From NCBI GenBank assembly GCA_003427395.1, contig BFEA01000014.1:87754-151753 (forward strand): 64,000 bases of DNA, in the 5' to 3' direction. The position numbers and the translations under genes are program-made. Positions 9,488 through 9,544 of the stretch are shown piece by piece. Origin of the DNA: Chara braunii (Eukaryota > Plantae > Charophyceae). The notes beneath the pieces were generated by a model. That model ran no database searches and was not told the origin of the DNA. It was given only the letters and a program-made list of their open reading frames with translations. How positions within the stretch are numbered: the first letter of the stretch is position 1; each line of letters starts with the position of its first letter.

Positions 9488-9544
9488 CAGACTGTTTCGT
9501 TGGACTTTCACCAACTCATCAGGAGGTTGAACCCCGACAATCTG
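9488..9544 (-). ncRNA. Type III hammerhead ribozyme
   Basis: Minus strand CAGAUU-GUC^GGGG-UUCAA-CCUC-CUGAUGA-GUUGG-UGAAAGU-CCAAC-GAAA-CAGUCUG. Complete catalytic core with 4-bp stem I, 5-bp stem II closed by G10.1-C11.1 and 8-bp stem III. The GUC triplet predicts a cut between 9536 and 9535. Confidence 0.9.

Follow-up and report, generated by a model that had tools for sequence, protein, structure and literature searches.

The stretch of Chara braunii DNA analyzed here, referred to as the window, comprises 64,000 nucleotides of contig BFEA01000014.1, and the locus of interest lies within a gene that is read from the minus strand and that, judged from its sequence, appears to be an ASH-domain (ASPM-like) gene. 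A frame encoding an ASH domain of the ASPM/SPD-2/Hydin type spans 12742..13722 (Pfam PF15780, E-value 4.8e-9), and downstream of it a long open exon occupies 10202..12211 within a 724-codon frame (10040-12211). This exon carries a few poly(A) reads, and a probable RNA contig covers it at 10221-10650 with one difference, ending near the donor site. The splice signals delimit an inferred host intron of 4.8 kb at 5411..10201, with the donor AAAAG|GTGAGC at 10202|10201 and the acceptor ...TTTTCTGCAG|CAA (a pyrimidine tract and CAG|) at 5411|5410, both in phase 0; the 4.8 kb include a 796-N assembly gap at 7421-8216. The next inferred exon, defined by splice signals and an open frame (QIDEGRIVMRDG...YNPIWLRLGVE...), spans 5097..5410 and ends in CAG|GTAAAC near 5097.

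Database searches, run with single exons, contributed little to the naming of the host gene. An HMMER search with the ASH exon against 1.84 billion representatives returned weak ASH-domain fragments without useful names, while a PDB sequence search with the host exon gave no match. The exon at 5097..5410 has no Pfam match and no usable match in the ESM Atlas, and Pfam detected neither CH nor IQ domains in the minus-strand open segments of the remaining 5 kb downstream. Besides the ASH domain, the ASPM identity of the gene leans on what we take to be a conserved motif. An earlier annotation made from the letters alone (the sequence-only reading) had placed a hammerhead ribozyme in the sense strand of an ASPM intron, and this placement holds for an ASPM-type ASH-domain gene, with a textbook donor and acceptor in the same phase: the ribozyme lies in the sense strand of the intron, approximately 660 nt past the donor. 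Two further features were observed in the same intron, namely a weak U2-like match at 8329-8440 (minus strand) and, at 9853-9992, a palindromic hairpin of ~90 nt that gives weak matches to miRNA models on both strands, has a DNA depth ~100x that of single-copy sequence and is probably a MITE-like repeat.

The type III hammerhead ribozyme (HHR) occupies 9488..9544 on the minus strand, as defined by its match to Rfam RF00008, its sequence and its predicted fold. Its core is complete, comprising CUGAUGA (9522-9516), GAAA (9498-9495) and GUC (9538-9536), and all three stems are present at the positions given in the sequence-only reading. Stem I pairs 9535-9532 with 9526-9523 (4 bp, including one G.U) and is closed by the 5-nt loop UUCAA, whereas stem II pairs 9515-9511 with 9503-9499 (5 bp), opens with the G10.1-C11.1 pair and carries the 7-nt loop UGAAAGU. 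Stem III pairs 9544-9537 with 9495-9488 over 8 bp, including one G.U and the A15.1-U16.1 pair, and its end is open, which assigns the ribozyme to type III. The predicted cut falls at 9536|9535, after the C at 9536, and the combination of type III topology with a stable 8-bp helix III leads us to expect cutting in cis by the monomer.

Comparison with the Hammerhead_3 covariance model, which the sequence-only reading had proposed as a check, gave an end-to-end match by cmscan (9543..9489, full model 1-54 of 54, three helices) of 46.7 bits, with E-values of 1.6e-9 for a 241-nt segment and 4.2e-7 for the whole window. The score lies 1.8 bits below the Rfam gathering cut-off of 48.5 bits, a curation threshold that implies no structural requirement; for this reason the ribozyme is not listed in a default Rfam scan and surfaced with E-value reporting. 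That the motif is a chance likeness in low-complexity DNA could be argued from this slight shortfall and from a fold energy that is ordinary relative to shuffled sequences (z = -1.4), but with a window E-value of 4e-7, only 0.01 occurrences of the core and helix II pattern expected per window, and thousands of homologous copies in which the ribozyme is the best-conserved segment, the probability of such a coincidence is negligible. The motif at 9488..9544 is real and well beyond chance, a point settled by the existence of the family described below.

The minimum free energy structure of the isolated RNA (61-65 nt) is essentially the hammerhead shape. When the context is extended to 161-261 nt, the complementary microsatellite flanks are predicted to out-compete the ribozyme fold. 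On the element strand, a (CT)n(GCCC)n tract upstream is complementary to a (GC)n(GA)n tract downstream, and the long hairpin predicted from them encloses the ribozyme. Such flank pairing could reduce ribozyme activity within the pre-mRNA, an effect that folding during transcription may avoid.

The island that surrounds the ribozyme is a ~100-nt, 5'-truncated copy of the 3'-terminal part of an element, assigned by read mapping and by alignment with other copies to a subfamily designated A, and it occupies 9456..9557 on the minus strand. On the element strand, the ribozyme is followed by GGCUCAGUCAUGC, a run of eight U and the 3' end GGAGUUCAUCCA. The element lies between microsatellites, much as the sequence-only reading had described it: a (TC)n(GC)n tract (9367..9455) abuts its 3' side, and a degenerate (GTGC/GT/GC)n(GGGC)n(GA)n tract (9558..9645), which on the element strand resembles (CA)n/(GCAC)n, abuts its 5' side. 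At 9557, paralogues extend further upstream with a common sequence (loose-end agreement 0.61-0.79), and the 9456..9557 copy is thus 5'-truncated at this point. The U8 run (9468..9475, minus strand), which the same reading had noted 3' of the ribozyme, forms a subfamily boundary: most paralogues lose their likeness here, each of the four runs showing loose ends at 9468/9469, and other A-type copies switch within the U-run to different tails leading into (CA)n. A second subfamily, B, diverges earlier, at 9488/9491 right behind helix III, into a conserved tail of its own. Neither flanking direct repeats around the ribozyme nor a discernible target-site duplication were found.

Relative to the family majority, the 9456..9557 copy differs at 5 of ~90 positions (9485, 9501, 9513, 9540 and 9549) and is therefore ~5% diverged. 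Three of these five differences sit in helices, and pairing is kept in every one of the three. The 10.3-11.3 pair is U-A in this copy and C-G in 58-72% of copies as well as in all four sampled relatives, while position 16.4 is U (U.G) here and C (C-G) in 96% of copies; the frequencies of the stem changes across copies are unlinked. These pairing-preserving changes are not read as a sign of selection: the two in helix II are CpG transitions, and whenever a C opposite G turns into U, a wobble pair remains. A covariation count over five sequences found 81.7% of cells paired, compared with at most 53% when the alignment was slid, and with so small a sample it gave no significance against shuffles. 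Minor family variants at 9535/9536 and 9498/9499 are what CpG decay would be expected to produce at the cleavage site and at G12.

The abundance of the family was assessed by mapping reads onto 9453-10650 at 85% likeness, using four data sets from the same organism: a DNA run, a set of contigs that is probably RNA (its type being a guess), and a pair of raw poly(A) RNA runs. From the DNA run, 3578 contig pieces map to 9467-9557. Summed DNA depth in the three 40-nt bins of the island amounts to 46,079, 258,895 and 37,233, the peak bin being 9493-9532, which makes this ribozyme segment the most widely common part of the family; depth drops ~7-fold upstream of 9533. Over the neighboring single-copy exon, DNA depth is flat at 12.7, and the resulting ratio of ribozyme to exon is ~20,000, a ratio of summed depths that does not equal copy number. 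Taken together, the copies in the Chara braunii genome number roughly 10^4 or more.

Copies of the family were also located directly in assembled sequence. Within the window, a repeat search, blastn and nhmmer identified a single relative of the island, a truncated subfamily B copy at 30846..30943 (minus strand, nhmmer match) that ends in a 3' tail of its own and is flanked by (TA)n on either side. This copy starts in loop 2 of the ribozyme and is cut back harder at its 5' side than the 9456..9557 copy; it matches the read-derived B tail consensus at 25 of 26 positions, and its tail is the same as that of two B copies in the sampled Chara locus L001, which lie tail to tail in (TA)n at 14166-14290 (+) and 14470-14352 (-) together with a ~30-nt 3' stub. 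The L001 pair at 14166-14470 forms a ~230-nt hairpin and attracts spurious matches to plant MIR models (MIR7723, 102 bits, below the cut-off). A full A-like ribozyme is present in locus L005 at 9332-9386 (Hammerhead_3, 47.1 bits). In total, six copies were counted in 278 kb, comprising the window and ten 21-kb Chara loci fetched via annotated proteins, and five of these ten loci (107 kb) added none.

The related copies whose existence the sequence-only reading had made a point to establish are thus found, both in reads and in sampled loci, as an abundant family with a conserved ribozyme. Their 5' starts vary, lying in loop 2 (the B copy of the window), in stem I (L001) or at 9557 (the A copy), while the 3' end is common, and subfamilies A and B share a 3'-terminal motif (GGAGTTCATCCA and GGCAGTTCTATTTGA, respectively). 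A microsatellite adjoins every copy, (TA)n for B and (CA)n-type for A, and in the reads the A tails run out into (CA)n. In a handful of contigs, 'goes back' joints of 52-65 nt plus filler correspond to copies that are closely stacked or in tandem. One probable RNA contig is 2942 nt long, with the ribozyme situated ~130 nt from an end, which hints that long family members may exist.

Transcription of the family was evident in the poly(A) runs, in which 751 and 1951 reads map over the island; only 0 and 7 of these, respectively, are at least 99% identical to the locus, and the intron next to the island has essentially no poly(A) read cover. The island reads derive almost entirely from paralogues, and the family is transcribed somewhere, either from both strands or as seen through an unstranded library. 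Read ends at 9535/9536, which had been suggested as a trace of cleavage, do not pile up in the poly(A) RNA-seq, a library type poorly suited to 5'-OH and cyclic-phosphate ends. RNA depth across the cleavage site falls ~6-9 fold, and this fall was rejected as evidence of cleavage, as DNA depth falls alike (~7 fold) and both falls trace to truncated copies.

Considering all of this, we regard the HHR as the conserved heart of a ~100-nt, 5'-truncated 3' end from an abundant non-coding retroelement family, present in the intron as a passenger (probability about 0.85). The earlier proposal of a footprint left by a ribozyme-bearing, microsatellite-associated retroelement is borne out by the abundance of the family, its 5' truncations and the microsatellite at each copy. 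The description of that element as uncharacterized does not stand, as hammerhead-bearing, microsatellite-targeting Chlamys elements have already been published for Chara braunii (PMC8557442). Chlamys Penelope-like elements are present in this genome at very high copy number, and two of their C. braunii subclades have a canonical hammerhead, termed a 3' HHR in one case (PMC8557442, Craig et al. 2021). These elements insert with a strong preference for microsatellites, (CA)n and (C)n being named as targets; 5' truncation is widespread, and partial-tandem or inverted insertions are common (PMC8557442).

Provided that the reading as a retroelement remnant is right, the family is probably the 3' part of Chlamys Penelope-like elements or a non-autonomous derivative of them, a link that is circumstantial because no reverse transcriptase or GIY-YIG open reading frame was found: none of 84 long frames in the window and five Chara loci (~170 kb) contains either Pfam domain. 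The closest counterparts, matched by description, are Chlamys-2_cBra and the EN-minus PLE-X families, which share with the family the same genome, an HHR near the 3' end, the copy number, 5' truncation and microsatellites (PMC8557442), and the tail-to-tail pair in L001 fits the published inverted or stacked insertions of Chlamys (PMC8557442). Unlike Chlamys, the family shows no RT, EN or gag open reading frame linked to the 9456..9557 copy or in the sampled loci, and its subfamily B resides in (TA)n, the published target of Naiads rather than of Chlamys (PMC8557442). All family copies seen here are ~100 nt long, and they could equally represent a non-autonomous derivative.

Truncations nested at the 5' side, a constant 3' end, insertion into microsatellites and inverted or stacked arrangements together constitute the signature of target-primed reverse transcription, and a mechanism can be proposed on this basis. 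The family would represent the 3' region (pseudo-LTR or tail) of Chlamys-type elements, or a derivative mobilized by them, whose RNA would serve, beginning at its 3' end, as the template for target-primed reverse transcription at a nick in a microsatellite; for the 9456..9557 copy, the target would have been a (CA)/(CG)-type tract. Reverse transcription would mostly stop early, leaving short 3' ends in which the ribozyme is still present. During the life cycle of the element, the ribozyme may trim transcripts that are tandem or read through, thereby giving them a defined 5' end. No copies starting exactly at the cleavage site were seen, and loose ends at 9534 were rejected as candidates for such starts, their consensus being the letters of helix III shifted by one base, that is, an indel variant. 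The 9456..9557 copy would then have landed in sense orientation in the intron of the ASH-domain gene as a passenger, with any self-cleavage of the pre-mRNA being a by-product that serves no function.

An origin from a plant-type LTR retrozyme or a viroid-like remnant, in which two type III HHRs lie in direct LTRs, the RNA circularizes and mobilization depends on Ty3/Gypsy enzymes, would account for the ribozyme type, which is that of plant retrozymes and viroids, for a streptophyte host and for the few contigs with 52-65 nt 'goes back' joints. Plant LTR retrozymes carry their two HHRs in direct LTRs around a non-coding body of 600-1000 nt, with PBS, PPT and TSD, and they resemble the Chara family in having a type III HHR, in being non-coding retroelements and in belonging to the green lineage (Cervera, Urbina & de la Pena 2016, PMC4918200). 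The Chara copy differs from them in having no LTR pair, second ribozyme, PBS, PPT or TSD. Only one full hammerhead is present in the 64 kb, the other being a truncated stub, and neither flanking direct repeats nor a target-site duplication is discernible; moreover, nested 5' truncations with a common 3' tail by microsatellites point to target-primed reverse transcription and not to LTR integration, which makes a retrozyme origin improbable.

A regulatory role was the other main alternative. If the HHR had been exapted, it would cut the nascent pre-mRNA and compete with splicing, thereby lowering or timing ASPM-like output, and several observations agree with this: the ribozyme lies sense within an intron, its core and stems are intact despite ~5% divergence with three stem changes that keep pairing, and the CPEB3 intronic ribozyme provides a precedent for an effect on host expression (PMC10919898). 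The vertebrate CPEB3 ribozyme, which is HDV-like, is likewise a sense self-cleaving motif in an intron of a protein-coding gene, but it is single-copy and conserved at the orthologous position across species, whereas the Chara copy looks recent and belongs to a huge repeat family (PMC10919898). Given that its family reaches ~20,000x single-copy depth, the Chara HHR is multi-copy, unlike the single-copy exaptations of the CPEB3 or HH9 type. The copy belongs to a family with roughly 10^4 or more members, many of which likewise lie in introns, in either orientation, and an intact 55-nt motif is unsurprising under neutrality at ~5% divergence. Poly(A) reads of at least 99% identity are absent from one run and do not exceed 7 in the second, with no ends gathering at 9535/9536, and in a context of 161-261 nt pairing between the microsatellite flanks is predicted to prevail over the ribozyme fold. 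HH9 and HH10 are intronic hammerheads of vertebrates. The effect on gene output raised by the sequence-only reading has nothing in the data pointing to it, the island being one of ~10^4 or more copies with no locus-specific RNA, and we consider exaptation very unlikely.

For the passenger copy, self-cleavage is a separate matter from regulation. Because neither the core nor any of the three stems has been disrupted, the ribozyme of the 9456..9557 copy may well self-cleave within the pre-mRNA, and co-transcriptional cutting of the ASPM-like pre-mRNA is possible for the same reason, the core and helices of this sense copy being intact. The 9488..9544 locus itself gives no special evidence for intronic cutting.

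In metazoans, the hammerheads of Penelope-like elements and of their retrozymes are of type I. The metazoan non-LTR retrozymes, hammerhead repeats derived from Penelope-like pLTRs, offer a further comparison, being non-coding, ribozyme-bearing and abundant, and being thought to be non-autonomous Penelope-like derivatives (PMC7229834; bioRxiv 10.64898/2026.07.22.740005). Their helix III is often weak, their tandem arrays yield circular RNAs, and vertebrate retrozymes are reported to be depleted from introns (PMC7229834; bioRxiv 10.64898/2026.07.22.740005). In contrast to metazoan retrozymes, the Chara copy is of type III, has a stable 8-bp helix III, and is solitary, truncated and intronic.

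As a single locus, the island is of little weight: it is an ordinary truncated repeat, best annotated by masking and not as a gene-specific regulatory ribozyme. At the level of the family, a hammerhead retroelement has thoroughly colonized the microsatellites and introns of a streptophyte alga, and intact type III ribozymes can occupy the sense strand in introns of essential genes. A wider reading, in which the many intact sense hammerheads of Chara introns together attenuate host transcripts genome-wide and, as a milder point, the family is a green-lineage, SINE-like type III element that depends on Penelope-like elements, is a long shot as a joint claim. If it were true, Chara would be a natural system for the competition between ribozyme cleavage and splicing, and a type III-hammerhead, SINE-like Penelope-like dependant of the green lineage would be a class without explicit description so far. 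If the copies cut in vivo, they would amount to thousands of natural experiments on the tolerance of intronic self-cleavage in Chara.

Searches beyond this genome and neighboring loci yielded several unconnected observations. Two metagenome scans and a scan of bacterial and archaeal genomes with family-specific patterns gave no match. In two IMG/VR phage-like contigs, an intergenic type III hammerhead lies just upstream of an ORF (L006:3338-3366 on the minus strand and L007:3908-3936 on the plus strand); the helix II and loop 2 of these hammerheads are letter-identical to those of Chara subfamily B, a likeness that probably reflects convergence on a generic consensus and not common ancestry. 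At L002, a distinct repeat family carries a hammerhead-like core (CUGAUGAG...CGAAAC or UGAAAC) with a longer helix II region at positions 7807 and 2396, both on the minus strand, and these cores have no Rfam match at E<0.001.

Other repeats are present in the window. Four U6 snRNA-like copies occur in the 64 kb (2055-2159, 23236-23322, 22909-22966 and 16666-16774, plus strand), two of which score above the Rfam cut-off, one of these lying behind an A-run and being truncated at its 5' end; the set resembles dispersed retro-copies of U6. A Harbinger/PIF-type transposon pair comprises a DDE_Tnp_4 transposase at 26838-28019 (plus strand) and a Myb/SANT-like ORF at 31204-32511 (minus strand). The ~60 best matches of the transposase are all hypothetical proteins of Chara braunii (CBR_g...), with identity up to 78%, and this family has dozens of annotated paralogues in the species.
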